Assembly: GCF_003704095.1 (NCBI RefSeq)
Contig: NW_020846346.1
Coordinates: forward strand, 1-64,000
DNA: 64,000 bases
Source of the DNA: Pocillopora damicornis
Taxonomy: Eukaryota
Reading direction: 5' to 3'
Of the stretch, positions 1-55,806 are shown in pieces. A program made the position numbers and the translations under genes. The notes under the pieces were generated by a model, which saw only the letters and a program-made list of their open reading frames with translations, was not told where the DNA came from and did not search any database. Numbering within the stretch: position 1 is the first letter of the stretch; each line of letters opens with the position of its first letter.

Positions 1-2027
1 TTCCTGTTTATTTGTAGGGAGCTGTGCGTAGGAATTCTTTGTTTTTCCAGTATCTCATTGTCTTTTGGTTGTTCGTTTGTTTCATTTAAATTGAGACTGT
101 TCCTTTAAAATCGATGAACTTCGAATTCATCGGTAACTGCTTGAATAGAGTACATTAATTTAAACGTAACGGGTATCATTAAGTCGACACCAGTTTACAA
201 ATTAAAGCTAAGTTTACCACAATTTAAAGAATCTCGGCCAGGATCAATTGTCTTTATATAAGTAAACCGAAATGTTAAAGCCAAGACATCCGATATGAAA
301 CGTTACTTAAACATGGTTCAAACGTTCATTTGCTGATGTGAATTCCTCAGAGGTGTTTAAGTTAATGCGACAAGTATTCATGATCATGACTTTACTCAGC
401 TTCCTTTCTCAACAGTTAATGAATTCTTGACTGTCACTCGCTTTAGTATTGACTTTAATTGAATCATTTCTATCTTAAAGTTAATTTTGATTTGTTGAAT
501 TTGCCATTTTAACAAAGTTCTATAACTTAATTGTTACTTTTTGCTCCCGTACTAACTTCTCAAATATCACTGCTATGACACTATAGAGTATATACTAAGT
601 TTGACTCCTATAATGGTGAGATAATTCTACCTGTAGTTCTAATTAATTTTCAATGGCTTCACTTCAAACAGCTTTGCTTTGCCCAATTTTTGAAAAAAAT
701 TTTTATTCATTTAAAACAAATGCAAGGGAGCATAATTTGTAACTTCTTCACTCCTATCAGTGTCTTCCCTGTCTGCTTTTTTAACTTGTGGACTTGAAAG
801 TTTGTCAGAGTATAGTAAAGAACAGTATAATTGCTAATGTCTACAAGCCTCTTGTAACTAATCTGAGCTACTTTGATAATTGCTCTCTTTCTTCTGTTTT
901 TATTTCATTGCTAACTCAGGGTAACTTCTTTACTTGAGTGCCAAGTGTTAATTAAACTATTGAATTCAGTCACCATTTGAAGCAATGATTCCAAAAAAAA
1001 TGTTCTCCTCAATTGCAATACAAAATAGTTTCAAAGACCTTGACACTTTGCTGAAAACAAGTGTTAGAAGTTGATGTAATAAATTATGAATTCATTTCTG
1101 CATTCTTGAGTGTAGGTCTGCATGAAGAATACTGAGAAAACCTTACATGTTAATCAATACCTGCCAGCATTATTAACATTAAAATTCTAGTTGCAAACAG
1201 TCAATTTTCAGTAGTATTGGCAGCCAGCTCAGGTTGCAATTTTGCACCTTGTCTCCATGAACTATATTTATACATGTTTTCCTTTTGAATTTTGTGTATG
1301 ACATTTTGTCTTTGTATGCATTTTAAAAGTATACGTATTTGTTTTAACTTTTGTAGAAAACACCTTTCTGAGAATCACCTCATTGTAAGAGAGAACCCTA
1401 TATAGACATAAATATCCAAGAAAGAAGGAAATTATTAACTTTATAAACAGCTGATGCAAATCATCTTCCTTACCATTTTCATCATGTTTTTCATGTCATC
1501 ATCATCTTTATTTTTACGACAGACTAAGAGATGAGAGCCTGTTTTAGTAGCACATCCATGTGTTCAGGAGCAAAAAAAAATGTTACATTATTTTAAAACT
1601 TACTGTCTGAACAACTTACATTTAGTTGTTCATGATGTATGCATATTCAATTGTAAAATGACCGCATTGTTATTCCATGTGATAAATAGATTTGTGTTGT
1701 TGTACATCTGTCCAGCAATAGATCATTGTTGACATCAAAATGTGTGAAGAACAAAAACATGACATAAGGTGCAGTCGAGTGTGCCGTGGATGTGCTTACC
1801 ACATTTTGAAGTAGGAACCCATCAAAGTGTGTGTATAATTCATTTTATCATTGATCCATGTGTGTTTACTTCCCTACAGCTGAGTTCCAGAATATTCTTA
1901 ATTGGGGTTAAGTTCCATTGCAACAGCTGCAGGTGTTCTGATACTTGACTGACTGAAGAGCCACAACTTACAGTGATTTTGGCACAGAACAGTTAATTTT
2001 TCCAACAGCTGGTTGAATTTTTTGCTG

Positions 2028-2111
2028 TCCACCAGATTAATCACCACCCAGTAGATTGCTGTGAACACAATCAGCCACACAATCTACTGGGTCAGTGGTT
2101 TATCTGGTGGA
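2028..2111. repeat. Palindromic repeat (MITE-like hairpin)
   Basis: tccaccagattaatcac-cacccagtagattg...caatctactgggt-gtggtttatctggtgga. Confidence 0.65.
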
Positions 2112-2953
2112 TGGTATTTTTGATTCAATAAAGCAACAGCAAGGACCTGATCGAGAGTTTAATTCAACTACTGCTACCATCTCACAGGAGAAGCAACTTG
2201 AAAAGTGAGTGTTTATCTTGTATGTCTAATTAAGTCTATGTTCTTCAGCTCAGTGGTGTATATTTCTACAGCTCTGATTACATCAATTGCCTTATCTATA
2301 GTGACTCAACCCTTTGATTCATTTTCTGACTTTTATTTTAATTTGAATTAATCATCCAGACACATTAAAAATTATCACCTAGTGCTTTGATAAGAATATG
2401 TTTTAAGAAGTGTGAATTAAATAATAACTGGCTGCCTTTAAGAAAGAACCTCTGTACATTGGGCTTGAGACAAAACCTTCGGTTGATTTTTTTTTATCAT
2501 GTTTTTTGATCTGAGTATCGTATAAGCTTAGTTGTACAAACTGGAGATGTGTCCAGTTTTCTTTGATGTTTGCCATCAGATGTGATCATTCATATCTTTG
2601 AGGGATTTTACATCTATTGGGTAGGAGGTCAAAAAACACAAATCTTTATTTGTATTTGGGCTTTGACATCCACTGAGATTGATTTTGTATTTTTCAGTTA
2701 TTATGACTAATGATTCTTGGTAGATTTCTGCAGTAAAGCAGATTATCTAAGTTTAATATAATTCTGTCCCATAATAAACTAACATTAACTTCTACAGTTG
2801 CATCAATTAAACATTGCTTAAATGGACAGGACTGGAGGCTAGTTATTGTGTCCAGGCTTCATTATGGGAAATTAAATTGCATGGTAATAAGTTGCTGAAT
2901 TTTGGTTTTTAATGTGTTTCTGTATTGTTTTTATTTTCAGGAGCTGATTGGCA

Positions 2954-3270
2954 ATGTCAGAAACTGCAAAAACTGACGAGAGCAGTTCAAAGAACATTTA
3001 TGGTGACCCACCAAAGATTAATATTAGTCTTCCAGAGATAAATGAACTAACCCAGAATTCTAAACCCTCGAAGGATGTTCAACTCCCAATTGACATTCTG
3101 TTGTTAACAGTGAAAGACTGTGAGTTCTTAAGCTGTTACTATTACATTGCTGGTCCATTCAGAAGCTATTTTAAAGGGATTGGTCATGTATACTTTGGGA
3201 GCATTGGTGGAGACCAGGATGTTAAACTGAAAGTTGCTTTGATGAAATGCTCAGAGGGTTCTAAAGTTCC
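2954..3270 (+). CDS. PNP_UDP_1 / MTA-SAH nucleosidase-like domain protein, copy A, N-terminal part (cut by gap)
   Basis: Acceptor ttttcag ends at 2940. An in-frame TGA precedes the ATG at 2954. Translation contains LPIDILLLTVKDCEFLSCY...VYFGSIG...KVALMKCSEGS, a close paralogue of the 4733-4040 exon. Runs into the gap at 3271. Confidence 0.8.
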
Positions 3271-3370
3271 NNNNNNNNNNNNNNNNNNNNNNNNNNNNNN
3301 NNNNNNNNNNNNNNNNNNNNNNNNNNNNNNNNNNNNNNNNNNNNNNNNNNNNNNNNNNNNNNNNNNNNNN

Positions 3371-4733
3371 AAGCTGCTGTTACACTTGCAAATGTTTGCC
3401 AGTTTTCGTTTGCTTCAGTTCCATCTGCATACCCTGAAATACCCCTGATAACGACCCATTCCATTTTCAGATCACGTGCTGCGCTGAAAACTCCTGAGAC
3501 AAAAAAAAACAAGCTTTTAAGAATAAAACAACAAATTTTCTCCAACATCTACTGATTTTAACCATTGTTATCATGTTACCATTGTTATCAAAAATTTGTA
3601 AGGAACTAGAGATATATTTTGGAAAGTTATGTATACTAAATACCAAGCTAGTCCCTGTAGCACGAGCTTCTCCCAAGGCTCATACCATTCAGACACTAAG
3701 ACTGTACCCTTACTCCCTCCACATGTATATGAAATAGTGGACAGTTCATCAGTAGCCATCTATACTCCTGGGTGTAGAGACACACTGTGAGAGTAAAGCC
3801 TCCCAGCCAAGACTACAACACAATCCCATTAGCCCAGGGCTTAAACCCAGACCTCTTGATCTGAAGTCCAGTATGTTCACACACAGCCAGTGCATCTCTC
3901 GACACTGGCAGAAAAGTTTACCCAACACAACTGATATCATATAGGTATCAATTCTCTCTCCCTAGATTCAAATATACCCAAATATCTCTTTGAGCAGATT
4001 TTAAAGTAACAGTTACTTAAAAGGAAAAGGAGACCTTACCCTCTCCTTCTGTCTCAATTGCAATTGCTTCAGGAAATGACTTCACTAGTTCATCTCGTCG
4101 CCACTCAGCTTGTACGAGCTCTGAACCACTCAAAACCTCACCACAGTGGACTTCAACCTTCCTTTCTTTAGGATTTTCTAGGGGTGGATTCCAACCATGA
4201 CCTGCACATTCGATGAGTTCAGCGATGTCTCTGCTTACAGGAGTTATGAACCCACGAAATTTCTTGCCATCCTTTGCAACCTTCTGATAGGAATAAGTTG
4301 TGAGCTTTTTTGATACAACCACATCCCCCAGCTTTGTTGATTCCTGATTCATGCCACTACAGTGGCCTACAGAAAAGACAGCTTTTGGCCTCAGCTGAGT
4401 GACAGCATTTTTTACAACGATCAAAGCACCACCAGGAACGTTAGAACCCTCTGAGCATTTCATCAAAGCAACTTTCAGTTTGACATCTTTATCTTCACCA
4501 ATGCTGCCAAAGTATACTAAACCAAGCCCTTTCAGATAGCTTTTGGTTAGATCATTAATGTAATAGTAGCAACTTAAAAACTCAACGTCTTTCACTGTTA
4601 ACAACAGAATGTCAATTGGGAGTTGAACCTCCCTCCAACGTTTTTTCGACTGGGTAAGCTCACTTAACTTTGGAAGATTAACACTGATCTTTGGTGGATC
4701 ACCATGAGTGTTCCTGCGAGTGCTTGCTTCCAT
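3371..4733 (-). CDS. PNP_UDP_1 / MTA-SAH nucleosidase-like domain protein, copy B (exons 4733-4040 and 3493-3371; probably continues in 6945-7051 and 8028-8308)
   Basis: Family motifs LLLTVKDVE, LRPKAVFSVGHCSG, KLGDVVVS, HCGEVLSG, AIAIETEGEG and WVVIRGISGYADG. GT-AG phase-1 intron 4039-3494. ATG at 4733 with an upstream in-frame stop. Confidence 0.88.
3745..3890 (-). mobile_element. tRNA-derived SINE fragment in the PNP intron (related pieces at about 22630-22715, 43610-43800, 56620-56850)
   Basis: Minus strand reads tggctgtgtgtgaacatactggacttcagatcaagaggtctgggtttaagccctgg (degenerate A/B box tRNA head) followed by ttgtgttg..cttgg..tttactctcacagtg. Confidence 0.6.
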
Positions 4734-4764
4734 TCTAACTTGTAACGATGCCAATCAGCTTCTG

Positions 4765-5696
4765 TAAAAGAAACAATACAGAGCAATTGATAAGATACTT
4801 TGAACACTTGAAGCCATTCCATAGAACATACACTAAGATTGTTGTCGAGCTGTACATGTTGGTTGCTGATCTGAAGGAAAAGTACAATTTGAAATAAAAA
4901 AGGGAGGTACCATGCTCTTTTATGAGCAGCAATACCTTCTAGATATATATATCATATATTTGTTAAATTGGTATTTCTGAAATGTTCCTTTCCCTGCACT
5001 AAGAATTGGTTTATAATTGTTTGACAGAAAGAAAATAATTTCCCAATTCCAAGAAAGAGAAATAATGGTACACAGGAGGTCTTTAAGCTCATTTGCAAGA
5101 AAATGAAAATTTAATTTTAATTTTCTGGTGAGCTCCGATTGAGAAAAAAAGGCACCATTTTTACGAAGCATGCACCATAGTCACATGTGAAGTTATACAC
5201 AGTGAGGATGTTTATGCAATACTAACGAATGACAATTGAATTTACAATCTCTTTGCCGGGACACAATAATTAGCCTCCAGAATATTATACTGTCCATTGA
5301 ATCAAGGTTTAAGACAACTGCAGAAATCGATTTATTTCGGTATATAAGTAGCATTTATTTACTTCTGGAAAGAAAATTTTGAAGATAATGGCCATAAATC
5401 ATATGCATATGCACCTTCCATTACATAGAAAACTAAAAATACACATCATGTGAGTAGAATGTGAAATTGCAACCAGCTGGCTGTGAACCCTTCCAAAACT
5501 TCATATAAGTCACATAAATCCCCCACATAATTACATATCCAACATATACTGTATGTCACACGTCCCATAAATGTCACATGTATGTGCAATCACGTCAGAA
5601 TCTTTACATGTATGTCACATAAATGCAATATTTATCATATATACACATAAATATATAACAGACACATAAGTGTCACACATATGTAACAGACATGTA
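4765..5696. repeat. Segmental-duplication block U1 (upstream flank of PNP genes), copy 1
   Basis: Aligns by eye with 9771-10173 and about 12087-13070; shared strings include tatgagcagca, gaattggtttata and catatgcatatgcacctt. Confidence 0.8.
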
Positions 5697-6944
5697 NNNN
5701 NNNNNNNNNNNNNNNNNNNNNNNNNNNNNNNNNNNNNNNNNNNNNNNNNNNNNNNNNNNNNNNNNNNNNNNNNNNNNNNNNNNNNNNNNNNNNNNNGAAA
5801 CAATCTGTTGATAAACCACCAAGCTACCGATCATTTAATCGATCGATCGATCCGGTGCGACAATCTAGAGATACAATATGTAACGTAACTTATGGAAAAA
5901 TGCTTGAAGCGCGTAATCTTTACTACTAATTATCAAGTACAATGATCCGATTGGTGAATCTAATAGCTTTGAATTACAAAAAAGAAAAGGCTTAACAGAT
6001 GCTTTTGACTCTAAGAAAACTTCACGGCTGATAAAGATATGACTTTCAGATATTCTTAACCATTTATTAAAGAAACAGTTAATAAAAGTTATTGCAGGCG
6101 CAGTGGTAACTTATCTGGGGTCATGGGCTCCACGCCTGTGTTAAGAACAAAAGAAGAAGAAGAAGCTATCAACGCTGTGGGCGATCAAATCTTTTTGAAA
6201 ATGCGATCCTGGAGGGAAACTCCTACTCTTTTCATAGCTTAGAAGGTATAGCTCTGATGATTGGCCTTCAGTAATGTCAGCTGAATGTTCATCTTTATGA
6301 ATTTACCCAATCATTTCCACAATCGAATACGGTGAAACCTGTATCGGTGTTCATTTTCTTAAGGTTAATTCATTGCTGAACCTTAAATAGAACGAGGTGA
6401 GTAATCTGGAACCTATTGATTGAGGTAAACATACCTTAATGCAAGTTACTTTAAAAGAAAAACTGCGAGAAAATTCAGGACTTGCGTCAGGGTCCACTCT
6501 AGACAGGGTATCATTTGTGACTAGCCTTTGGAGGAAAACGCCTCATAAAAGAATGCGAACATCATTTCAAGCCGAAGCTCTCAAAGTTTATTATAAAGGG
6601 CTACCTTGAATTGAAAAAGAAATTCCTAGCCAATATGAAGGATGAAATTCTAGATTTTTCCTTTACCTTCTTTTAACCTCAACAGCTGCCAGATGCCCCT
6701 GACACATTCAAACGTTTGATCACGACCTCGCACGTATAGGAGTCCAGTGCCACTGCCATTGCCTTATCTGTTTCTTCGGGACTAAAGGGTGAAAGCCTTT
6801 AAGCACTGGAAAACAGTGAGACATGAAAAACTTTGAAGGAAGCANNNNNNNNNNNNNNNNNNNNNNNNNNNNNNNNNNNNNNNNNNNNNNNNNNNNNNNN
6901 NNNNNNNNNNNNNNNNNNNNNNNNNNNNNNNNNNNNNNNNNNNN

Positions 6945-7051
6945 TGAAGCAAACGAAAACTGGCAAACATTTGCAAGTGTAACAGCAGCTTCTTTTGTTG
7001 TCAGCATTCTAAACCAATGCAATGACTTTGAAGATTGGCCACATTACCAAG
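6945..7051 (+). CDS. 3' part of the PNP-domain C-terminal exon
   Basis: EANENWQTFASVTAASFVVSILNQCNDFEDWPHYQ-G|gtgaac (phase-1 donor). The first 47 nt are the exact reverse complement of 3371-3417. Confidence 0.8.
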
Positions 7052-7387
7052 GTGAACAGATCAACTTTTATCTTTCATAGGCCTACAGTATATTTGCTTG
7101 CAGTCACTAACTAGTCATGTATGCTTTTTTAGTTTTGTTTTCAATAAATGTGCTGCAACCGAATTGCCAAAACTGAATCAAAAACATGGTCAATGACCTA
7201 TGATCATGCGCTGATCAATGACTGCAGCTCTTGGATCAGAAATGTTACCTGGTTGTTGACGTCAATTCAACATACAGGAGTTCTATAAAAATGGGTGGAT
7301 CTAGCAAAATGGCATGAATAGCTGCGATACGCACCACTCGCTATCCCCTCATCTTGATGTTTTGCTGTGATGTCTTTATGTTTTTAG

Positions 7388-7491
7388 TCAAGGAAGAAGT
7401 TTTCAGTGACGAAGATTTAGAGTGGCCTTACCTAAGTTGCTTATTGTATGGAAAATATTTTTTTCAAGCTTTTCGCTCGATTGCAAAGTAG
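7388..7491 (+). pseudogene. Truncated death-domain exon copy (possible alternative terminal exon)
   Basis: Intact acceptor tttttag, then (V)KEEVFSDEDLEW matching the start of the DD exons. Homology stops at about 7426 and the frame ends at TAG 7489-7491. Confidence 0.6.
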
Positions 7492-8027
7492 AGATATAAA
7501 TAGTGGGACATCAAATCTGTTTACCTGGCGATGACAATTTTTCTGCCTGGCAGAAGAAAAGGAACAAGAAATCTTCTGTTCGCATATGTGGACGTGCATA
7601 TTTCGTGTAAAATGATGCACAATAGGGACGCATAATGCAATGGCACGAATTGTCCTTGAAACAAACTCCTCAGGAGACGTTTCATTAGGAAAGGAAAAAG
7701 CTCCATTGCTACAATGAATCTGTTGGCTAAAAAGATCTGGTCTAATGATTTGTTTATATTTGTTATCATGCAGATGGTCGAAATAAAGAATCGTCTCCGC
7801 GTGACGCTTTAACTCCAAAGAAAGGAAAAACTCGTTTAACAGGTAAAATAAGGACATATCTATAAGCGTGCCCGTTAACCCCCACCTCCCAACCCCATCT
7901 TCCCGCCCCCTGCCTTTGTAAAATAAAAGTGAGGGGATCCAGCAAAAGGGAAAAAAAATAGTTGCCATACGTACTACTCGCTATCTCCTCATCTTAATGC
8001 TTTTCTGTGATGTCTTTATGCTTTTAG

Positions 8028-8308
8028 TCGAGCAAGGAGTTCCCAGTGACGAAGATTTAGAGTGGCTTTCGCACCAACTCGAAAATTGGGAGGAACTCGG
8101 GCGTCGTCTCGAAATTGAGGAAGCAACTTTAACGGCGTTTGACGATGACTATAAGAAAAAGCGTAAAAAAATCTACAAAATGTTACTACATTGGAAACAG
8201 AAGGATGGCTCAGCTGCAACATACAAGGTCTTACATGATGCATTGTGTCATGAATTTGTTAAGCGCACAGATTTAGCTGAGAAACTTTGCTGTCAACAGC
8301 ATGAATGA
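8028..8308 (+). CDS. Death domain terminal exon (phase 1), likely C-terminus of a PNP-DD protein
   Basis: cttttag acceptor. (V)EQGVPSDEDLEWLSHQLENWEELGRRLEIEEATL...KIYKMLLHWKQKDGSAATYKVLHDALCH...RTDLAEK* has the classic DD pattern W..LGR.L / ML..W / AT...L..AL. Confidence 0.88.
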
Positions 8309-8888
8309 CNNNNNNNNNNNNNNNNNNNNNNNNNNNNNNNNNNNNNNNNNNNNNNNNNNNNNNNNNNNNNNNNNNNNNNNNNNNNNNNNNNNNNNNNNNN
8401 NNNNNNNNNTTTGTGATCAGCTTTTTAATATCACTACAAGTGAACTCTTCAAAATAACTTCGTTTTTCTCACATTTACAATAAGAAAGATAAAAAAGTGA
8501 AACTCTGGAGCTGGCTTTTTCCCGCTGTTTTGGTTTCTTTTCGACGGAAATGATCGGGTTACAAATATGGACGTAAATGGTGGTTTTGTCCGGTGATTTT
8601 GTACCGCGTGACGTCAAGTAGTCAATAGAGTTGCACGAAAAGTTATGGATGGGTCTTAACTAGCAATATTCTTTAACACTTAACGTTTTTCATTAAAAGA
8701 ATAGAAAGATGCATGTGTGTAAGAGACAGAAAAACGATCCCGTGAGGAAAAGGAAGATAACTGATTTAGTAATTCACATGGTAATAGTGTAACCATACTG
8801 GGGATGCTTGTTCATTTGGCAGTGGAATAATTAGTAAAAATAGAGATAAAAGCTGTCTGTGAGTCAATAAAATAAAAATTCACTCATG

Positions 8889-9160
8889 CTATTGACGGCA
8901 AAGTTTCTCAGCTAAATCTGCGCGATTAACAAACTGATGACACAGTGCATCATGTAGGACCATGTATGTTGCATCTGAGCCATCCTTCTGTTTCCAATGT
9001 TGTAACATTTTGTAGATTTTTTTACGCTTTCTCCCATAGTCATCGTCAAACGCCGTTAATGTTGCCTGCTCAATTTTGAGATGACGCCCGAGTTCCTCCC
9101 AATTTTCGAGTTGGTGCGAAAGCCACTCTAATTCTTCGTCACTGGGAACTCCTTGCTTGA
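8889..9160 (-). CDS. Death domain terminal exon, paralogue (stop 3 codons early)
   Basis: Same acceptor and phase as the other DD exons. KQGVPSDEELEWLSHQLENWEELGRHLKI...RADLAEKLCRQ*, with CAG>TAG relative to the QQHE* end of the other copies. Confidence 0.75.
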
Positions 9161-9374
9161 CTAAAAACATAAAAACATCAGAGAAAAGCATCAAGATGAG
9201 GGGATAGCGAGTAGTACGTGTTGCATCTATTCATGCCATTCTGCTGGATCCATGCATTCTTAGTTTATAAAGGCAGGGGGCGGGAAGATGAGGTTGAAGG
9301 TGCAAGATCATTGAATTGCAAGATTAGTGATATATAACCAGTGATAAATTGGGGTAAATTCGAATATGCCCCAG

Positions 9375-9767
9375 GTTGCTCAGCTAAAACTGTGTCATTA
9401 GCCAATGGGTGACACAGTGCATCATGTAGGACCGTGTATGTTGCAGCTGAGCCATTCCTCTCTCTCCAATCTCTCTCTCCGATGTAGTAACATTTTGAAA
9501 ATTTTTTCAGAGTATTCCACATTTTTATCGTCAAACGCCGTTAATCTTGCTTCCTCAATTTTGAGAAGATGCCCGAATGTCTTCCATTTTTCGAGTCGGT
9601 GCGAAAGCCACTCTAAATCGTCTTCACTAGGAACTTGGCTCCTATTTTTAAATAACGGGCAACACTCACTTATCTTTGGAAGATTAATATTGATATTTAG
9701 TGGATTACCTCGAATGTCTCTGAAAGTGCTTGCTGCCATTCTAACTTATAACAATGCCAATCCGCTT
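9375..9767 (-). pseudogene. Chimeric exon: N-terminal ~25 codons of the PNP exon fused to a frameshifted death domain
   Basis: Acceptor and MAASTFRDIRGNPLNININLPKISE are homologous to the start of PNP copy B. They run directly into SQVPSEDDLEWLSHRLEKW. A 13-nt duplication near 9458-9483 shifts the frame, and the DD resumes as WRERNGSAATYTVLHDALCH. Confidence 0.75.
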
Positions 9768-9770
9768 CTG

Positions 9771-12060
9771 TAAAAGAAAAAAATACAGAGCAATTGATAA
9801 AATACATTGAAGACTCAAAGCCCTTCCGTAAAACACACACTGAGATTGTTGTCAAACTGTACATGTTGGCTGTAGATCTTAAGTGAAAGTAAAATTTGAA
9901 ATGAAAAATGGGAGGTCCTATGCTCTTTTATGAGCAGCAGGACCTTCTAGATATCCATATTATTCCTATGATATCATGACAATTACATTTGTGCGAATTT
10001 GTAGATTAGCATTTCTGAAATTTTTACCTTTCCCTATACCAAGAATTGGTTTATAGTTGTTTGACAGAAAGAAAATAATTTCCCAGTTCCAAGAAAGAGA
10101 AAAATGTTAGTTATCCAAGCTCATTTGCGAGAAAATGACAATTTACCTCTCTGGTGAGCTCCGATGGAGAAAAANNNNNNNNNNNNNNNNNNNNNNNNNN
10201 NNNNNNNNNNNNNNNNNNNNNNNNNNNNNNNNNNNNNNNNNNNNNNNNNNNNNNNNNNNNNNNNNNNNNNNNNNATTTATCATAGAAATATAGAACAGAT
10301 ACACAAGTGTCACACATACATAACATATATGTAGTTCTGGTGAGGGGATAAAGGAACTTAATGACTTCCTCTCTGCTTTAACATAGCTTGGTTGTCAAAA
10401 AATTTGCGGATCAGCTTCGAAAAGATAAAACCATGCACCTCAGTCCTCGTTTAAGACATTTTAAGTTCCTCAGAGGGGCGATTCGATTTGAGTCACACAG
10501 CGGTTGGTCACTAGGTATAATATTTTTCTAAATGATGACTAGAGGCCGTGCGAACGAAAATAACGATAGTGCGTACGATGCAAGAAGAAAAATAACACTT
10601 GGGATTGGACTCATTGTGTCGTTTGATCACGAAATTTGCACGTAACTGATCAGAGTAAATATAAGATATCGCCAGACCTAACGAACAATCAATCGACGAA
10701 TAAACGTGACCCAAACTTCAATATCTTCGCTTTAACAATCGCAACTTGTGGCTTAACTTATTCGAAATAGAGTTGACCAACGAAAATCCAAAGAAACAAA
10801 TTCAAAATCAAGGGAACGAGAAGAAGAGTATGACAATAAGTCACAGTTTATGTCTGAGTCTGAACATCTCCCACCTATCGATCGAACCGAGTGGAACTCG
10901 ATTGTTTGGATGAAAACAAGTATGTACGATGAAAAATGTGCGCCTGTGATACGTTAAATTTTATTATGATGAAGTTCGGTTATAACGCTCGCTGCCAGTG
11001 GTTGAAAGAGAGTGCTCTATTAGAGTACAAAGCATAAAGCTGAGCTAAAGCTGTCACGTCATCTGTTAAATTGTACTATGCTCGACCTTTTCCGGGACTT
11101 CTCTCTAGTTTTTTTCGTTAATTGGAAGAAAAATTTCGGAACAAGTAAGCTGGCAAGTAGCAACAGAAGAACCAAGCAAGGGTTTGTAAACATGCTAAGC
11201 GCCGTAATTTACGTTACTATAGCATGAGCAGAGACGAAAATCCAAAGACAAAACGAAATGGACGGTCCGAATATTGAAGGTTTTCACGCTCNNNNNNNNN
11301 NNNNNNNNNNNNNNNNNNNNNNNNNNNNNNNNNNNNNNNNNNNNNNNNNNNNNNNNNNNNNNNNNNNNNNNNNNNNNNNNNNNNNNNNNNNTGTTCCAAA
11401 TGTGCTCTTCTGCGACAAATCTCAATGATGCATATCTTCTCAATTGTTTTTTATTTCTTCACTTTCCTTCCCTTTATGCAAAATTATTGATATTTCAATG
11501 AGAAATGTCTATTGATAAGGCGAAAAATAGCAAAGGGAGACATGACCTGTCACAATAAACCACATTTTTGTTTTCTTAGAGCAAATGTCATCAAAATGGT
11601 GATGCAGTCTGGCATATGGCCTTTTGAAGCGAAAAATAATATTTGCAGCCTTACTAATTTTTTTCTTTTTACAGAAAATCTGTTACCTAGGGACGTTGAT
11701 ATTGAGGTATGTATTTCATAGAAATATTATTTATAGTCATTTCTGTGATATACTGACAGACATCTGATATGGTACAGGCTGTGTAGAATCCATGTAAAAT
11801 GCTACCGACCCTTACTGTCAATAATGATATAATTGTAAACATGTCACATCATATCATGATCAGTGCAGGATAATAGTCTACTCCGGTGAAGTGTAAGAAA
11901 CTTGTATGTATAACTTCGTGAAGGTATTTTCTTTGGGGATCAAAGTTTTAATATGATATTTGCCAAGGTTTTTTTTAATCTATAGATTTTCTCCTTGCTT
12001 GGTGCATTTTCAAAGGCTGATACTTCTACAGAGGCTTCCCAAAAGGGTTCTTTAATCCCG
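9771..12060. repeat. Segmental-duplication blocks U1+U2, copy 2 (two gaps inside)
   Basis: 10274-11291 matches about 13010-13770. 11392-12060 matches about 32388-33040 and partly 15613-15770. Confidence 0.8.
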
Positions 12061-12086
12061 CGGTCCCTGCTAAAATTTTCTCTCAA

Positions 12087-25682: not shown

Positions 25683-25782
25683 NNNNNNNNNNNNNNNNNN
25701 NNNNNNNNNNNNNNNNNNNNNNNNNNNNNNNNNNNNNNNNNNNNNNNNNNNNNNNNNNNNNNNNNNNNNNNNNNNNNNNNNN

Positions 25783-27235
25783 ATTAACCACTGCGGATCC
25801 AGCACGACCAAACCATCTGGATTTTCTGCGAGATCTTGGTAGATAACTCTTCCGCGAGCTTGTAAAAAGTGAAGCAATTCTTCGACGTCATCTGGGCCAT
25901 TAAACTGGCAAATGCCCCCAGAAATGTCTTCTGCAAAACGCTTCTTTCCAATATAATGCATTCCTTTCTCTTTCACCATTTCGTCGACTTTTTGTTCCAC
26001 ACGGAGCCATTGCATAGGGATTACCTTGTTAATATGTGGCATTTTTTTAGCCAGATTCAATAATGCAACACGCAAAGAAACGATCTGTGGATCGTCTTCT
26101 CTGTTTGGATTTGTGTTATCCATGAAGAATACTTCTTTTGAAATATGGCCTAAGGTTGCTGGATGAGCCACGCTGGAAATGATTTCCTTCACAGATTCCA
26201 TTTCCTTGCAAGGATCCTTTACACCATCAGCATGTGTACCCACGAGCACCACTGGAGGCAAAGCTTGGTTAGTATCTGCCGACTTTCTTTGAAGCTCTGG
26301 CTGTCCCAAAGAGTGCACCAAGTCCAGCCATCTCATCATGTGATCGAGATTAGTGTCCTCGACGTAAGGCGAGTTTACCTCTATTTCATCTTGATTAAGT
26401 GGTCTTATCCGACATTGGGCAGGAGCACTTAACTCCTTCGTAAGATCTAACACTAGGACATATATGGCTTCTTGCGACAGGAAAATTGGATGAATGGCAT
26501 GGTATACTGCCTGGCCGGCAAAATCCCAAACAAAAGGCCATATATCCTCATTGTCGGAGGTGTCGTTTCCCTTAAGGCCACGCTCTACGAGGGAAAGGAC
26601 TTTCTTGGGTACTTCTTCTGGTTTTCCCTCAATTTTGACTCCCTGGAAAACTAATATTGATATTTTTTAATCAGTTTTTACGTTTCCTAAATACGCTATT
26701 CAAGTGCAAACAACACACCGAAGCTATGACCCAGGACCGGTTGTTCAAAGCAATAGCAATGCGATTGACTGAATTTGCACTTCGTGTAGAAGAACTAAAA
26801 TATTTGTAAAAACTTCGCGTCACTTTAGCAACCTGTGCAAAAAAAGAAACTTGTAATATAGCATGGTTTCACGCGAGCGTATGGGTAGAAACTTTACGGG
26901 CTTTACACATCCAAAATAATATGTTTACGTTACAGAGCTGGCGCAATGGAAAATACTTATCCCTACAAGTGAAAGGTCGAGGAATCGACTCCAGGCGCTG
27001 GCAAGATCTATTTTTTCTCGTCTTTCTTTTTCTCTTATATTTCCCTATTTTTTAAATTGTATTCTACCAAAACATACGTTTTTTTTCTTTTCATCCGGAA
27101 CATCACCTTTTTTTTAGCAGAAATCGGCAAAGCATGGCGTTTGTCTCTCCTTTGTCCACATAGCTCTTACGTTCAAATCGATAAAAATGTCGAAATGCGG
27201 AGGTGAGGCACTTACAAAAAAATTAACTAAGCCTG

Positions 27236-27271
<36 letters not shown>

Positions 27272-29411
27272 TCCAAAGAAACCCGATCAGATTCGATCAA
27301 CGATGGCCAGTGTCGGAACTAAACCAAGACGAGTCACAAGAGATGTTAAAAGTGTCTCACAATAGTCCCCCATTTTCAAAGCCGCGAGAGGTTTGGCAGA
27401 AGGTTTACGGACTTGCAACGCATCATAACGGAGTGCCTACAGCCTTCTTAGAAGGAGGGCAGTGTAGGCACAAAAAGGGGAGGTTTTAATCATACTAGAA
27501 TACAGTTCATCGATATTGTCTTCTTCGGCGATCGATTATTCAAATTCTGGATTAACAAGGTTTTTAAAAACAATGCCCATACTAAAATGTAAGGCGGCTT
27601 GTCGTCCTCGAAAGTATATTTATCCGAGCGCTTCGTATGCGCAAGATTTGTTCAAACCTTGGTTGAGACCTTATGCACGCAGTATTAATTAAAATCAATT
27701 TTTCATCCGTCAGTAAAACTTTCTGGTCTCAGATCTTAGCTGTCGTTATTTCTTAGCAGACTGGTAAAATTTTGACCAATTCCAAGCTATCAGTTGAGCT
27801 CCATGCAAGAAATTCTAATTGAATATGCAAAAGCCTCATGTGCTAACGGATTTACCCAAAATTGGAAAGAAGATGTGGAAAGGAGTTCTTGAATGATTGA
27901 TGCAAGGAGTGAATTTTGGGTCATAACAATAACTCGGAAATTCGCTTTCAGCCAATTTCCTAAACGAGTCACTACAGCAACAACGTTTGCATTTGTAAGC
28001 CGCTTCGAATAATGGGCACCGTAGATTCAAAGATAAAACACAACTCAACCAAACGAGAAGCCACGTTATAAACAGTCTTTCATTTCCCCACAAGTTTATT
28101 GTTATTTTAAATGCTATGCCTTAAAAAAGGCAGAGTGAAGCGTCTCGCTACTGCTCTGCTGAAGTAAGGAATTAGATCGACTTACCAAGAAAGCAGTATT
28201 AGCGTATTTGAAATAATTAAGTTCTGGGTAGACTGAATAAAATTCGGCATGACTCCTTAATGAGCAAGCCTTTCCATACCGCTCAACACTTAAGCCGCAA
28301 AGTAATAATGTTAGTAGAATGATTCAGAAAAAAGTGTTTAGTTTACATAGTACAGGGCGGGGTTGACAAAAAATTGTTTCCAAAGGGTTGTCAAACATTT
28401 TCACAATCAGTCGAAATGTACGGAAAAATTAAAACAGTTTATAAAAATTTTTTCTCCTAAGGAAAATAAAACAAGAGGTAAAAATAGCCGAAATAGAAGC
28501 GCTACAGTACTGAAGGGATTTATCACTCGTGATTTTGAAGACAATCTCAAGAAAGTCGTTCAAAGAATGGGCCTCAGTCTCTTGAACGAGAAAAGTTACG
28601 GGAGAAACGCATTCAGTTCGTTACTGAACGATCCAAGTCGTAAGACTGTCATTAAACCAAAACAAAAAAATTAACAATCCGTTGCAGTTTTACGTTAGAA
28701 ATTGCTTTTGCTAAATGGTTGGGGATTGATACTGTAATGTAAGGAGACAAAAACTGCACGGAACATTTTTCCGGCAAGAAACGAAGAATGACTGAGCTAA
28801 CATTTGTTTGACCATTTACTAAATCTTGACCGGCTACCGTGCTGCCGTTGTTTTTGAGTCTCGAATAACCTCTCTAGTACTTAACAAGTACCTTGAATCT
28901 GTAAAGAAGCTAGTCAATGTCAGGGCTATAGTGAGCTTTACCTTACCTTTTCTTTCAATGACTTCTTTTGAAGCAAGGTCGTCATTTGAACGTTCTTGAG
29001 TCACTCCCTTTTCTCCTGTAGGTTCGCCTCTCGTCTCCTTTACTTTTCCAGCAAACCCTTGAATCCTTTGTAGTCGTTCTTCAGAGCTGCTGCGTAACTC
29101 TTGTGTAACCAATTCTGCACACTTGTGGTCAAGTGCACTCGTTTTTTCAAGCAGGGCTGGATTCCTCCATGCCCCTTTTCCTGCGTTCTTGACAGGGGAA
29201 ATCATTTCGATCCCATTAGTGCTGGCTTCATCTTTAACAAATGCTTCACCTCTGAGGTATCTTCTCAGGCTTGTTTTGCCTACACGGTCCTGACCAATCA
29301 ACACAATTTTGGTACGTCTATCGAAAGTTTTGCCTGTCTCCAGTGCTCTCCTGTATGCCTCTAGTGCCACTGGTCCCCTCACCTTTATGTAGTCGGGGAT
29401 TGGAAATGTGA
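25783..29411 (-). CDS. Roco GTPase (ROC-COR), copy B, 5' part (exons 29411-28947, 26650-gap)
   Basis: GQDRVGKTS, STNGIE, WDFAGQ, VGTHAD, FFMDN, then COR motifs IPMQWLRVE, LLHFLQARGRVIY and VVLDPQWL. Same strand as, and collinear with, the COR-DD part at 22209-19327. Confidence 0.87.
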
Positions 29412-29802
29412 CTGCACACAAAACTTTTAAAGAAAAAACCAATTAATTTATTCCCTCGAAAATCTACAACACATACAGAATTCATGTTCAGTGAGAACAT
29501 CAAAGCAATCTCATATTGAGACTGTGAAAGGCCTATTTTTACGAGGACCTCAAGAAAATATTTCTCCGTAATCTTTCTTGGGACTTTAACTGCTAGGCTG
29601 GATTTTAAAATGGTTTTCGGAGGAGTGTTTTCTACAATCCCGCTCCAAAGCACACTCCTCCTGAAACCATATAAAGATCCAGCGATATAAAGATTCCCCA
29701 CACCAAAAAAAACATAACTCGACTTGGGTCTTCCATAAGTGTGCATGGAGACTAAATTTCTTCCCAACTCGAATTTGCCCCAACGAAACATTAAGTATTG
29801 TC

Positions 29803-30550
29803 TGGAAGTGGGGAATTTGCTAAGGGTTAGGGTTAGGGTCTAGGGAAAATTAGAGAGCCTGGAGAGAAAGTCTTCCGCAGAAGAAGAATACTGACAACAA
29901 ACTCAACCCACAAATGACAACGGGTCCGGTTTAACGATAAAAAGAAATGGTAAAATATATATATATGTAAACAAAACAAAAAGAAAAAGTCTTCAATCCA
30001 CGCCAGCTTCTACTCTTTAATGTAAACAAAACACACACAAAAAAAAGCCTTCAATCCACACCAGCCTCTACTCTTTAGCAAAAGGAAAGACTTTCTATCG
30101 TAACCTTTATCATTACCTTCTTTCTCCAAGTCAGATAATTCTCTTGGAAGGACAGTGCTCCCTCGAAATATCACCAGTCTCCTCTCCGGCTGTTCCAACC
30201 CGTAAAGGAGAGCATCTATTCCTAACAGGAGTTTATTATAGGATTACACTTACTAATCTTAAAAAATGCGAGTCAAATGCAACCATTTCAAAAGGCGTAG
30301 CTTTTGGATTTTAATGCACTAATCAATTCGAAGCTGCAACATGCCCCAGTGCAAGCTAAGGGCATTTTACTGTCGCCTAGAAAGGGGAGATGAGGGGTGG
30401 TGGGAAATTGGAACCTTGCGTGGCTGAAGTGGGGAATTTGCTTAGGGTTAGGGTTAGGGTTTAGGGAAAATTAGAGAGCTTGGAGAGAAAGTCTTCCGGA
30501 GAAGACGAATACTAACAACAAACTCAACCCACAAATGACAACGGGTCCGG
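29803..30550. repeat. Local direct duplication of about 125 bp (29803-29929 / 30425-30550) containing short TTAGGG runs, plus a ~55 bp tandem pair at 29964-30075
   Basis: gaagtggggaatttgct.agggttagggttaggg...acaaatgacaacgggtccgg occurs twice. Confidence 0.75.
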
Positions 30551-31354
30551 ATTCGAAACCAAAACGCAGAGGTGGGAAAACAACGTTCTTAATACTGCAC
30601 CATCCAAGTTCTTCTGAAATACAGGTTCGTGCATTGTTCTCCCTGATCGGTAGAAATTATTTATTGGTCACCGAACTTGAATTTTATCTCTGCCATTTAG
30701 ATTAAACATTTATTACAGTTTTAGTGAACCTTTTCGCCTTGATGAGAGGTAAATATACGTTTCTCATCATGTAACTCATGCTGAAGTACTCTAGTACTCT
30801 TTGAGCAAACTATAAATTCGAAATTATGCTGAAAGGCCTCGCTTTCAGTCACCACTTCTGTCATGGGTATTCATCATGCGCATCAAGAAATGGTCGCTTA
30901 TTCCGCCCCATTTCCCGCGCCGTACTAAAGTCATTTCGCTACTGGTAGCGCTTGGGAACTTTTGCCAAATCTAGGCGAAAAAATTTCGTGAACTTTAACT
31001 TGGCGGGACCTGGATGAAACGGTTCATTGCAATGGGATGGCGGGTCGGGATGAAAATTAGCGGCGGGTGCGGTATGTTTTGGGCTCTCTAGCTCTTTTCT
31101 TCAAGCAGAAAAAGCCTGGAGACGAGTCATTGGTCCAGATTAACAGTTACGGACGGGCGTGTTAGCCTCATTAGACCCTTGCACATAATTAAGTCCAACA
31201 GAGAAAGAAGAGTGAATGTCAAGGTAGGTTGTCTCCGACGAAACTTGTACTTTANNNNNNNNNNNNNNNNNNNNNNNNNNNNNNNNNNNNNNNNNNNNNN
31301 NNNNNNNNNNNNNNNNNNNNNNNNNNNNNNNNNNNNNNNNNNNNNNNNNNNNNN

Positions 31355-33040
31355 GCAAAAGACAATTTTTGCCTTTCTAGTAAACTAATTACAGTTGAAT
31401 TACACGCTTGTCGTGGCTTATACGAAACATGATTGACAACGGTTTCTCACGGTTTTGTTTATTAAGACGATTTTGAATAATTTTTACCCGAGACAAATTT
31501 TGTTGGCGATGCGTCTGAAGATTTTTCCGCTTCGGCCAAATTCGACTCAAGAAGTGGGCAGAAACACGATTGTGTTTCTTCTTAAACTTCTTTCGTGCTC
31601 TATCCTCTTCGTGCGTGCTTTACAACAGAACAGTAAGAGACTGATCATGCGTGTTACCACAAATCTTTTGATCTGGCGTAGGCTAAGAAAAACGATCGCG
31701 TCTGTAAACAAAATTTACGCCATAGTTACCACAAACTAATCTTACCTTGAAACCTCCGCTATAAACGTGTCTGATCAAGACTGTGTACATGTAGCTATCG
31801 CTAGCATAAACATGAAGGCTGATTTTTCAACAACTCCAACACACTTGGTAAAAGACATGCAAATGTTTCTGGGAATTGTATTAATAATTAATCAGGTCTC
31901 AAAATGAGCCCTTATCGCTAAGTTACTCTTTGGAAGCAGACAGTGACACTTCGTAACATTCCTCAGGTATTTCATTCCGCTCTTCGCTGTCTGTACGTTT
32001 CCTGCTAAAAGTAAATTTTCTTTCGATATTCTGGAAATTTTTCATCAGGGTACACAGAAAGAACTTGAGTTTGTAGAGTTTTAGGGTTTTTTTAAGTACC
32101 ACACTTGTGACTTGACAGCCAGGACGCATTGCGCGACCGAAAAATGAAATACGATGCAACCAAGGTGTACAGCCTAACACTGACCTTTCTTGATGCATCC
32201 CTATAAACCAGTTTCGTCATAGCTGAAACACACATTCTTTATTTGTTTCCTCCACTCAGTCTATTCCTCTGACTGAATAACACTGATGATCAAAGGGCTT
32301 CGCGGTGAGCCAACTCGTGAAAAAAACTGTTTTATGTTAAACCCTTGTTCAGGAATACAAATGACTATGGGTCACCAGACAGTAGCTTTTCCAAATGTGC
32401 TTTTCCGCGACAAATCTTAATGATACATATCTTCTCAATTGTTTTTATCCCTTCGCTTTCTTCTCTTTTATGCATAAATTATGGATATTTCAATGAGAAT
32501 GTCGAATGATAAGGCGAAAAATATCAAAGGGAGAAACGACCTGTCACAATAAACCACATTTTTGTTTTGTTAAAGGAAACATCGCCAAAATGGTGATGCA
32601 GTCAGGCATATGCCCTTTTGAAGCGAAAAATAATATTTTCAGCCTTGCTAATTTTTTTATAGAGAATTTGTTACCTAGAAACGTTGATATTGGGGTATGT
32701 ATTTCATAGAAATAATATTTATTGTCGTTTCTATGATATCCGGACTGACATCTGATATGGTACAGGCTGTGCAGAATCCATTCAAAACGCTACTGACCCT
32801 GACTGTCAATAATGATATAATTGTAAACATGTCACATCACATCATGATCAGTGCAGGATAATAGTCTACCCCGGTGAAGTGTAAGTAACTTGTATGTATA
32901 ACCTCGTGCAGGTATTTTCTTTGGAGATCAAAGTTTTAAAATGATGTTTGCTAAGTTTATTTAATCTACAGATATTCTCCTTGCTTGGTGAATTTTCAAA
33001 GTCTGATACCTCCATAGAGGCTTCCCGAAAGGGTTCTTCA
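31355..33040. repeat. Segmental-duplication block U2 upstream of Roco copy B
   Basis: Matches 14585-15770 and 11392-12060; the spurious ORFs KRLIMRVTTNLLIWRRLRKTI and MIRRKI.KG..TCHNKPHF recur in both. Confidence 0.85.
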
Positions 33041-35117
33041 ATTAACCGAAAACAATTTTGCTGAAACAAATACCTCTTCCGAAGCGAAAAACTCTCCGGA
33101 GCGGAATATCAGCCTCTGGTCCAAAGATTTAAAATCATATCTTCCCCCCCCCCCCCCTCTCTCTCTCTCTCCCTTTTTTTTTTTTTTTTTTTTTTTTAAC
33201 TACTTAAGATGAATTCTTGAATTCTTGATTACATTGCTTGACAACCGTGCTTCTGCATGTTCACGTCGGAATGCTGAAGTTCATCTCCTCGCCTTCAAAG
33301 TGCAGCCTGTTGAATTCAAATTTGAAGGTACTTGCGAAACTCTGATACCAAAAGAATACCACGTGAAAATAAAGAAAGAGAGACTCAAGGATTTTGGGTC
33401 AAAGTAACAGCAAATTAACATCATCATGCAGAAGAGTTACGCAATAGAACTACTATCCTCCCCAATCTTCTCGCGGTTACATTATGGACGGTGACTACGT
33501 TGGAAGAAGGAGTTTATCAGAAGGCTTTTAAAAACGCGGAGATACGAAAGTTTCAGTTTCCAGAGTTTAGTACGGAAAAAATCCAGCTTTAAAAGAAGGT
33601 TAGTGGATAATATATTGTGATGAAGGTCGTTTTGAGGTCATATCCGACATACGGCGCTGTTTGAACGAAAATATCCTCTGTTTGGGTGCGATAATTTATG
33701 AATTGAGTAATGGTTACGAAGTGTTTCTGTTTCCTATCATATATTTTCAGTTCTGGCATCCAAGTCCATGCTTCACAAAGTCACTTGAAGTAATAAACTA
33801 GTAAGAAAGCGTCCAAACATTATCAAAATCGATTATCAGTCGCTTGCAATTCGATTGCCATGTCGAACTGACAGAATAACACCCAGCTTTAGCTTTTCGA
33901 TGAGCGAGAGCGAAGCATCTTGGTCATGGAAAGTTGTTGTTTTAATTCGTTGCTTTAGCCTTGAAGAGTCGGTTTAAATCCATGACATTTAAATCAGAAG
34001 TTCTACTGCTGTTGTTTGCTAAACTTTCATTGTTTTAAATGATGCAAGGTTCACGAATTTCCATTAAAGCCGGAAGTGAAGCGGAAGTTAGGAACTGAAC
34101 AAAAACACTTTCTCTTTTGAATGTTGGCGCGTGTGACAAATAACTTCCTTTTTGTCACCCAATCTATGTAATTATACACGCACGAGATGCAAATTCCAAC
34201 TCTCTGTGACCATGAATGCTTATAAAAAGTCGGCGTAGAAAAATTCGTTGAAATACACAAAAATTTTCAAGCGAATCCTGCATAAAATCAGGAGCCATTA
34301 CTAAGTAAGGGGCTCCTGCGTGAAATACATTCAACCAAAAGGGAATCTGAAATTAGTTCATTCACGTTAGCTACGATGTACTTGAAGGACAAATCATTAT
34401 CAAATCATATATTGGTTATTTTTGGGGGGGCCGCATTTTGCACACATGAATTGGTAGAACAGTTTCAAGCAGGAATTGATCATTCGTCGGGCTTGTTATT
34501 GAACCATTTCAACCAGTGTCACCATACAAACTTTCAAATGTTTAAGCATTTGGTTCTTTTCACTATTTTATTTCATTAAAGGTGAGTTGTCCGTCAGTAT
34601 TTTTGTTCCTATTGTTCATCATTTGCATGTATTTTCGGCGGTAACGGCTGCCAAAATACATTTATCCATTTCATAATTGTGGTGACTTTTGGTAGAGGGG
34701 TGGTGGGGTGGGGCTTAGGGGTTAGCAAGAGATTATTAATTCTTGGGGGTTAGCTAGTTAAGCTTTTGTTTACATTGCTATCGATTCAGCCTGATTTCTG
34801 TTTTGATATGAAATATTTAAGTTTGTGGACGCGGCCTAATTGGTCGATAGATGTGATTAGATGTGAGTGTTTAAAAACGGCTGTAACGTTTTAGATGTGA
34901 GCGTCAGTCAGTAAAATATTTTTTTAGAGCAATAGAGAGCCTTCCTCAAAAATTATGCAAACGTGGGACGGATTCGAGGGTTTGTGTAGCTGTCTCGAAA
35001 GCTCTCGACTACCTAAAGTTTAGATGAGATTACGTAAACAAGGAGAAAGTCCTAATCCGTGGTTTACACGTGAAATTGTGTAGGGATTCTAATCAGAGAC
35101 AGGGCTCCGGGAATACC

Positions 35118-55589: not shown

Positions 55590-55806
55590 TTAACCTTTCA
55601 CCTCCCATGAGTGACCAAGAGAGAATTTCTCCTTACAATGCTAATACCATATCAGGCAGACAAGTGATGAGAATGGAGAAAAATATCAATTAAGAAACTA
55701 TCTGTTGATCCAATACCAAATTCCCATAAGGAAAATCATAAGAATTGCATGGCAGACACAAAGGAGAAGTACCAACTAAATGAGATCTTGGGAATGAAAG
55801 GATTAA
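55590..55806 (-). mobile_element. TTAA-flanked piggyBac-type MITE, diverged copy
   Basis: ttaacctttcacctcccatgagtgaccaaga...gagatcttgggaatgaaaggattaa; same family as 63495-63697. Confidence 0.7.

Follow-up and report, generated by a model that had tools for sequence, protein, structure and literature searches.

Can a single animal protein unite a nucleosidase-like PNP domain, a Roc-COR GTPase and a death domain (DD)? The question is raised by a locus at positions 2954-29411 of a 64,000-nucleotide stretch of Pocillopora damicornis DNA (positions 1 to 64,000 of contig NW_020846346.1, assembly GCF_003704095.1), which is referred to in its full length as the window and lies on scaffold C2981 of an assembly of 234 Mb in 4393 scaffolds. 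An earlier note, made from the letters alone, had read PNP, Roc, COR and death-domain modules in this locus and had proposed an undescribed family of innate-immune receptors with a PNP-ROC-COR-DD ancestor. Pfam and profile searches placed PNP, Roc, COR-A and Death modules where that note had seen them, and the same exon modules do recur in different combinations. Three protein types are predicted from these exons: a PNP-DD protein of ~385 amino acids (aa), a Roco-DD protein and, in a related genome, a PNP-Roco-DD protein of 1075 aa. Our preferred reading, which we hold to be probable, is that of a lineage-specific, fast-duplicating pocilloporid cluster in which modules bounded by phase-1 introns have been recombined, and whose products may take part in death-fold signalling similar to that of DAPK1.

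Splicing of PNP exons to a Roc exon

The joining of PNP and Roc exons is seen on the plus strand of contig c8 (22310-25682), which carries a decayed, transcribed PNP::ROC chimera. Its PNP exon-1 relic (22312-22486) retains the 5' end and the last ~18 codons of the exon, the ~600 bp between them being gone and the ATG lost; the stretch 22312-22421 corresponds to the PNP 5' end and is 86-90% identical to other copies. The PNP exon-2 relic (23487-23608) uses a cryptic acceptor, contains a TGA in the old frame and has suffered a 1-nt deletion. An ATG at 23539 opens the ROC frame, which runs through 23 residues of PNP tail and into the Roc domain and stays open to the gap. There follow a copy of ROC exon 1 with its P-loop (24340-24711; Pfam Roc, E 1e-6 over 24339-24779), with a major acceptor at 24340 and a minor one at 24349, and the start of a copy of the Roc-COR exon (25241-25682), which is open to the gap and shares 90% protein identity with the other copy.

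Contigs assembled from polyA RNA of three studies contain GT..AG introns in c8, the first of which joins 22486 to 23487; the PNP exon-1 relic is thus both transcribed (RNA contigs from 22353) and spliced at 22486. The second joint, 23608 to 24340, was recovered in three runs (X1, X4 and X6), and the third, 24711 to 25241, in X4 and X6. The junction of 23608 with 24349 anticipated in the earlier note also occurs, in X1 only, and lies 9 nt downstream of the major form. Because RNA joins 22486 to 23487 and 23608 to 24340 or 24349, the decayed PNP exons and the ROC exon copy constitute one transcription unit rather than separate ones. A further RNA loose end, at 24341 in X1, has ROC exon 1 spliced to another PNP exon-2 tail, one of the intact type, so a second paralogue uses the same PNP-to-ROC junction.

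The fusion that the note had suggested looking for in relatives is present in intact form in three scaffolds, L032 (ERZ28656431), L033 (ERZ28656757) and L034 (ERZ28656034), which are named TARA_..._METAG and contain zero N. Window junctions were mapped onto these scaffolds, the exons were joined by a local script and profile searches were run exon by exon. PNP exon 1 is complete in each scaffold (alignment over 245 aa at 76-86% identity, without a stop) and is followed on the same strand by PNP exon 2, ROC exon 1, the Roc-COR exon and a Cys/His-rich exon, with Roc/COR-A and COR-B forming a single open exon; L033 additionally holds a 34-nt exon and the DD exon. All mapped splice sites are canonical and correspond by homology to the RNA-verified ones. 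Once the exons are joined, the reading frame runs uninterrupted for 1075 aa as far as the DD stop in L033, and reaches the contig end after 992 aa in L034 and 947 aa in L032. Pfam matches on the L033 exons comprise PNP_UDP_1 (7e-5), Roc (4e-6), Roc with COR-A (3e-13) and Death (2e-9). As predicted from these exons, an intact PNP-ROC-COR-DD architecture exists in related corals.

An alternative, which we consider quite improbable, is adjacency without fusion: the PNP exons would form a separate short gene, Roco-DD would start alone, and PNP-to-ROC splicing would be read-through noise of the decayed copy. The RNA contigs are informative at the junction level only and the best-covered junction is that of the decayed copy, which would suit such a view, as would the 4.2-kb intron between PNP and ROC in L033 and a Stylophora relative with a different N-terminus (see below). 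However, PNP exon 2 ends open, in phase 1 and at a canonical donor, with no stop, and ROC exon 1 does not contain an ATG. In L032-L034 the interval from PNP to ROC, which measures 830-1030 bp in L032 and L034, is free of DD or other terminal exons; the frame across the joint remains open in all three independent scaffolds; and the intact-type PNP tail of the second paralogue is likewise spliced to ROC exon 1.

The PNP-DD and Roco-DD genes of the window

The PNP-DD gene begins on the minus strand with a PNP/MTAN-like exon 1 (4040-4733), with its ATG at 4733 and a phase-1 donor after 4040. The first part of exon 2 (3371-3493, minus strand) runs to the contig end and carries the motif ISGYADG, where MTAN has SD. 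The remainder of exon 2 is found at 6945-7051 on the plus strand; its first 47 nt repeat the preceding part and a phase-1 donor follows 7051, giving a total exon length of 183 nt, equal to that in L033. A death-domain exon with a stop (8028-8308, plus strand; Pfam Death E 6e-11) completes a model of ~385 aa (4733-4040, the 183-nt exon 2, 8028-8308). Contig L031 of a related genome (556 kb, no gaps) has PNP exon 1, exon 2 and the DD exon collinear on one strand, and the DD part of contig c4 is collinear with L031 12016-12553. A tblastn match of the related protein P0269 is also collinear with the gene, which the earlier note had correctly assembled from 4733-3371 and 6945-8308.

Assignment of the PNP module draws on several searches. 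The Pfam PNP_UDP_1 match on 4020-4754 (minus strand; E 2e-3) scores 17.9 bits, and across window and related exons scores range from 17.9 to 22.7 bits, below the cut-off of 25.1. Family profiles of the PNP relatives match MTA/SAH nucleosidases in the PDB with E 3e-7 and 8e-8, an Atlas search with the PNP exon gave a score of 0.98 with 30/30 matches to PNP_UDP_1, and a relative 84% identical to the PNP exon has a precomputed PF01048 match. P0269 (415 aa) bears both PF01048 and PF00531, and its cluster mate P0273 is Orbicella faveolata XP_020621437. On these profile matches, the PNP exon is assigned as homologous to the PNP_UDP_1 / MTA-SAH nucleosidase fold.

A second PNP exon 1 is represented by its 5' part only (2954-3270, plus strand), where an ATG at 2954 opens ~105 codons that are cut by the gap at 3271. 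This fragment is 66% identical to the other PNP exon of the window and 84% identical to that of L034, and is matched in tblastn by P0269 residues 3-102. As a separate observation, P0230 (Logan-derived, 302 aa) contains spliced PNP exons 1 and 2 followed by 'DGRV' after ...WPHYK; this tail comes from neither of the DD and ROC exons, and a further partner module is therefore possible.

Pfam Death was detected at 7922-8305 (plus strand, E 6e-11), 8892-9230 (minus strand, E 1e-11) and 19330-19677 (minus strand, E 5e-12), the three DD exons scoring 42.7-46.2 bits against a gathering cut-off of 22.6; sequence matches of the P0269 DD in the PDB include the death domains of THOC1, RIPK1 and CRADD. The near-identity of the DDs, which had been remarked upon from the letters, is borne out: between the PNP gene and the Roco gene, DD-exon identity reaches 88% at the protein level and 92% at the DNA level, and it extends at 84% over ~380 nt of upstream intron. 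The remaining DD lies in a PNP/DD relic on the minus strand (8889-9810), in which the PNP 5' end and ~25 N-terminal codons are fused to a frameshifted DD (9745-9361), followed by an intact DD exon (9160-8889).

The Roco-DD gene occupies contigs c7 and c9 on the minus strand. ROC exon 1 (29044-29411) contains the P-loop GQDRVGKTS, within a Pfam Roc (PF08477) match at 28837-29442, and has a phase-1 acceptor at 29411 and a predicted donor at 29044. It lacks an ATG; one or more exons further upstream are absent or concealed by the gap at 31255. No PNP exon was found upstream of it (29443-31254), a stretch in which only ~260 bp proximal to the exon and two islands are common to the related loci. 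The first part of the large Roc-COR exon (25783-26650) starts at 26642 or 26650 and runs into a gap; it holds G3 (WDFAGQ), G4 (THAD) and the start of COR-A, with Pfam matches over 25785-26666 to Roc (E 1.5e-7) and COR-A (E 2e-5). A phase-0 donor at 29044 together with the acceptor at 26642 is predicted to keep the frame. The GTPase motifs G1 (the P-loop sequence), G3 and G4 are intact, and the Roc domain is split: the first exon encodes Pfam positions 1-38, the second encodes positions 53-91, and a hydrophilic stretch of ~70 aa is inserted between G2 and G3. COR-A (PF16095) scores 24.8 bits in the gap-cut window exon and 47-53 bits, against a cut-off of 35.3, in the uncut exons of L032-L034.

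The last part of the large exon, the COR-B region, lies at 21809-22209 and is joined to the first by RNA (22209 to 25783) in two runs (X1 and X4); ~160 nt between 25783 and 22209, a size taken from L032-L034, are missing from the assembly. PF25497 (COR-B) has no match on 21808-22209 and matches only 2 of the 63 closest Roco relatives themselves, and BLAST aligns the stretch to the region following COR-A in more than 60 Roco relatives. A Cys/His-rich exon of 90 aa (21205-21475) follows, with an RNA joint from 21476 to 21810 in four runs. It is 82-92% conserved in L032-L034 and 60% identical to Stylophora XP_022808466; AlphaFold2, given a four-sequence alignment, modelled it with a mean predicted local distance difference test score (pLDDT) of 36, too low for a usable fold, and in our reading the spacing of its Cys and His residues recalls zinc-binding modules. 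A 34-nt exon (20406-20439) leads from phase 0 to phase 1, is conserved in L033 and L034, and was traced from RNA loose ends at 21204 in three runs. The gene ends with the death-domain exon and stop (19327-19607; Pfam Death E 5e-12). The connectivity proposed for ROC-COR-CysHis-DD between 29411 and 19327 is therefore upheld by RNA and by L032-L034, except that the 34-nt exon had been missed. All junctions are canonical. The proposal that modules are bounded by phase-1 introns applies to PNP exon 1|2, PNP|DD, PNP|ROC and the junction preceding the DD, and fails for COR|Cys/His (phase 2) and for the donor of the Cys/His exon (phase 0).

The locus is assembled as short contigs split by 100-N gaps, eight of which lie in the range of the finding, and some contigs are flipped. 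Apart from c8, these are c1 (1-3270), c2 (3371-5696), c3 (5797-6844), c4 (6945-8309), c5 (8410-10174), c6 (10275-11291), c7 (11392-22209) and c9 (25783-31254). The gap at 3271-3370 has the PNP exon-1 fragment (plus strand) on one side and the PNP exon-2 end (minus strand) on the other, and the two sides are not continuous. At the gap 6845-6944, the start of c4 repeats 47 nt of the reverse-complemented end of c2 (3371) with 100% identity; this overlap and the collinearity in L031 indicate that 6945 continues 3371 and not 6844, and that c2 is flipped. The gaps 22210-22309 and 25683-25782, with c8 between them, interrupt a single continuous Roc-COR exon, and c8 is an interloper, given that RNA joins 25783 to 22209 and L032-L034 have ~160 nt at this point. 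The cluster is thus broken into small, partly flipped contigs in this assembly. Contig c1 or contig c2 may have its proper place ahead of the main ROC exon 1.

Such fragmentation invites the view that the locus consists largely of pseudogene remnants and assembly artefacts, its duplicated exons serving no present function. The eight gaps and flipped contigs would fit, together with the relics at 8889-9810 and 22312-23608, which bear deletions, a frameshift and a stop, and with the commonness of duplicated blocks of 74-92% identity. We nevertheless judge this view very unlikely: the Roc-COR exon is present in polyA RNA runs of at least five studies, splicing occurs correctly at canonical sites, four related loci free of gaps retain long open frames, and the GTPase motifs have survived.

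Two repeat patterns were recorded in passing. Non-coding blocks at 10275-15764 and 31355-33042 are duplicated at 84-92% identity, and their counterparts in L031 form a tandem repeat of ~4.7 kb, situated upstream of the PNP gene and with PNP 5' sequence after each copy, so that the duplication unit exceeds the genes in size. A dispersed repeat of ~200 bp, with copies in both orientations at 78-82% identity (16415-16625, 55589-55806 and 63491-63702), is probably a small transposable element.

Relatives and known systems

The window is AT-rich eukaryotic DNA (GC content 0.30-0.43), its exons occur in sequencing runs from coral or marine metagenomes and metatranscriptomes, and its closest named protein relatives belong to Stylophora, Orbicella, Desmophyllum and Nematostella. 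The genome itself yields at least 30 Roc-COR, 14 PNP and 55 DD matches, with further Roco-DD loci on C371, C4045 and C4113 and PNP-DD loci on C3982, where DD exons lie downstream; a PNP exon and a Roc-COR exon occur together on no other scaffold of this genome. Coral metagenomes (ENA/Tara) contributed more than 100 clusters of the PNP exon at the 90% level (75-98% identical) and, for the Roc-COR exon, ~68 clusters (72-97%). Some matches to the two exons lie on contigs of equal length, and L032-L034 were drawn from these. This assembly has no more than two or three copies, so that the family is either collapsed in assembly or extremely polymorphic.

Relatives of the Roc-COR exon were taken to the best 150, of which the 63 closest were scanned with Pfam and ten long ones at E 0.05. 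Among the long relatives are kinase-SH3-ROC-COR-DD and HEPN-ROC-COR-DD proteins of Nematostella, an OTU-ROC-COR-DD protein of amphioxus and an Ank-ROC-COR-DD protein of a hemichordate; the best 150 also include fusions with NACHT, TIR and caspase domains. PNP_UDP_1 was found by Pfam in none of the 63 closest relatives and, at E 0.05, in none of the ten long ones, and the window PNP exons had no BLASTP match in any of the best 150. These negatives indicate that a PNP-Roco fusion is not general to this Roco subfamily. A relative in Stylophora (XP_022808469 and XP_022808466, 61-65% identical) has a low-complexity N-terminus that is not PNP. From these comparisons the fusion looks specific to the Pocillopora lineage and not ancient. 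The epithet 'ancestral' in the earlier note may thus be retained within this coral lineage and does not extend beyond it.

DAPK1, a cell-death kinase of effector-ROC-COR-DD architecture, shares with the coral family the order of an effector, Roc-COR as an intramolecular switch and a C-terminal DD, and the closest long relatives are likewise of the form X-ROC-COR-DD. In contrast to DAPK1, the family has no kinase, calmodulin site or ankyrin repeats, its N-terminus is PNP/MTAN-like, its Roc domain is split by the ~70-aa insert and a Cys/His exon stands between COR and DD. The features of a DAPK1 orthologue (Ser/Thr kinase, ankyrin repeats) were not found by Pfam in the window or in the L033 exons.

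PNP domains in immune-type proteins have been surveyed by Rousset et al. 2023 (bioRxiv 10.1101/2023.01.24.525353), who report that Cap17-like PNP domains are ATP nucleosidases, describe PNP-Death fusions and an assay of the sponge protein DDAN, and record hundreds of NLRs from fungi and corals that carry PNP at the N-terminus. In the portion of its supplement available to us, Table S6 lists a 'Ras GTPase - PNP' architecture in fungi, and that portion contained neither cnidarian rows nor a 'Roc' label; the legend of Fig. 4 contains the abbreviations Roc, COR and LRR. The proteins of that survey resemble those described here in the fusion of PNP_UDP_1 to immune-type modules, a likeness at the level of domains. 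They differ in that here an animal PNP is N-terminal to Roc-COR and DD, whereas DDAN has the order DD-PNP, and in that the aligned Asp is here Gly.

NLR/STAND proteins, including the fungal and coral PNP-NLRs, are similar in possessing an N-terminal effector, an NTPase switch and further modules, and in their lineage-specific expansion and domain shuffling. Here, however, a Ras-like GTPase with COR would occupy the place of the switch, and no LRR, WD or TPR sensor repeats accompany it; NACHT or NB-ARC had no Pfam match on any window or L033 exon. Roc-COR (as 'AP-GTPase') has been described as the switch of prokaryotic conflict systems with variable effectors (Kaur et al. 2021, PMC8195603), and brown-alga LRR-ROCOs as proposed immune receptors diversified by exon shuffling (PMC11378527). 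Both share with the coral family a Roc-COR switch and variable effector domains, but they have LRR sensors, no DD and an effector that is usually C-terminal. Aplysia has TIR/Death-ROCO proteins. PNP-Death fusions, a fungal PNP-GTPase fusion and the use of Roc-COR as an immune switch are hence already known, so that 'undescribed' is to be confined to the combination itself: a literature search of limited reach returned no description of an animal PNP-Roc-COR-DD protein.

Possible function

What is documented here is the exon architecture with its splicing and expression, together with intact relatives. On the pattern of DAPK1, other Roco proteins and death-fold signalling, the proteins would act as effector-ROC-COR-DD molecules. 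The Roc-COR tandem would be a GTP-dependent dimerising switch, the death domain would bring the proteins into homotypic death-fold assemblies, and the N-terminal PNP would serve as an ATP- or nucleoside-cleaving effector, or else as a pseudo-enzyme that binds nucleotides or has a regulatory role. Their near-identical DDs may allow the short PNP-DD and Roco-DD proteins to enter these assemblies as well; a complex prediction for the Roco DD with the PNP-gene DD scored 0.02, which weighs neither way. A role in immunity, cell death or allorecognition is probable.

Several observations tell against this reading, in whole or in part, and the foremost concerns the PNP active site. In a hidden Markov model (HMM) alignment, the MTAN stretch 'RAISDVAD', which contains the general acid Asp197, pairs with the family consensus 'kgiaGyad', and Gly stands opposite Asp197 in the window sequence as well as in L032-L034 and P0269; the translations read ISGYADG in the window, ISGY(A/V)DG in L032-L034 and A-G in P0269. 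The E-M-E motif of MTAN appears here as ETE, with both Glu retained. Other PNP paralogues of this genome, ~50% identical, vary at the position: Asp is kept (IKDFAD) at C1043:6683-13449, and the residues are CG at C1276:20724-43357 and SG or SN at C3982:205746-225647. Mutation of a catalytic-site Asp abolishes the activity of Cap17 and DtcC (Rousset et al. 2023, 10.1101/2023.01.24.525353), and we infer that this Asp occupies the position of MTAN Asp197. The Gly renders a nucleosidase effector role uncertain for the clade, which makes the ATP-nucleosidase effector of the earlier note doubtful; judged by these residues, the domain may be an enzyme of weak or altered activity or else a pseudo-enzyme.

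The other points on that side concern the sensor and the gene models. No sensor was found, Pfam returning no LRR, WD or TPR repeats on the window exons and L033; the word 'receptor' is accordingly not sustained, the sole unexplained part being the 90-aa Cys/His exon, which has no Pfam match and for which an Atlas features search returned nothing above 0.78. The donor of ROC exon 1 in c9 is predicted and differs by 1 nt from the RNA-verified donor in c8. No full-length intact PNP-Roco-DD transcript was seen among the junction-level RNA contigs, and the intact form is not assembled here, c9 ending 1.8 kb upstream of ROC exon 1 with no PNP exons.

Some of these points lend themselves to a non-immune interpretation, in which a real family would regulate developmental or stress apoptosis, as vertebrate DAPK1 does, or nucleotide metabolism, and in which its diversity would stem from neutral birth-and-death duplication. 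DAPK1, the closest characterised architecture, is a cell-death kinase and not a pathogen receptor, and the want of sensor repeats and of the PNP catalytic Asp would be in keeping with this. We regard it as unlikely in view of the effector-switch-adaptor layout, of N-terminal swaps (HEPN, OTU, TIR, NACHT, caspase) typical of conflict systems, of the very many variants in coral metagenomes and of an adjoining guanylate-binding-protein gene. A more specifically immune proposal, which we put forward as tentative and rather doubtful, is a hypervariable, Roco-based counterpart of NLRs in pocilloporid corals: the catalytically altered PNP would be a sensor of nucleotides or other ligands, or a guarded decoy, GTP-dependent Roc-COR dimerisation would nucleate DD assemblies with PNP-DD and Roco-DD, and the more than 100 metagenomic variants would reflect diversifying selection exerted by pathogens, symbionts or allorecognition.

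The locus bears on three lines of work. Roco GTPases are the family of LRRK2 and DAPK1, and their regulation is still debated. An animal PNP-Roc-COR-DD protein would link ATP-nucleosidase immune effectors, which range from bacteria to animals, with Roco GTPases and death-fold signalling, and the locus amounts to a 'deletion series' made by nature, with a decayed chimera alongside PNP-DD, Roco-DD and PNP-Roco-DD, in which the role of each module is directly testable. It also provides an RNA-backed case of exon shuffling through phase-1 introns, and an instance in which a published short-read coral assembly misrepresents such clusters.

The remaining genes of the window were noted for context. 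Guanylate-binding proteins are an interferon-type immune GTPase family, and an exon for the N-terminal GTPase of such a protein adjoins the cluster at 35028-35624 on the plus strand (PF02263, E 3e-27). Exons of an ionotropic glutamate-receptor-like gene (Lig_chan, ANF_receptor) lie at 43081-43602 and 48426-48827 on the minus strand, and a Rab GDP-dissociation inhibitor gene with an unusually long exon of 386 aa (PF00996, E 2e-174) occupies 58156-60973, also on the minus strand.

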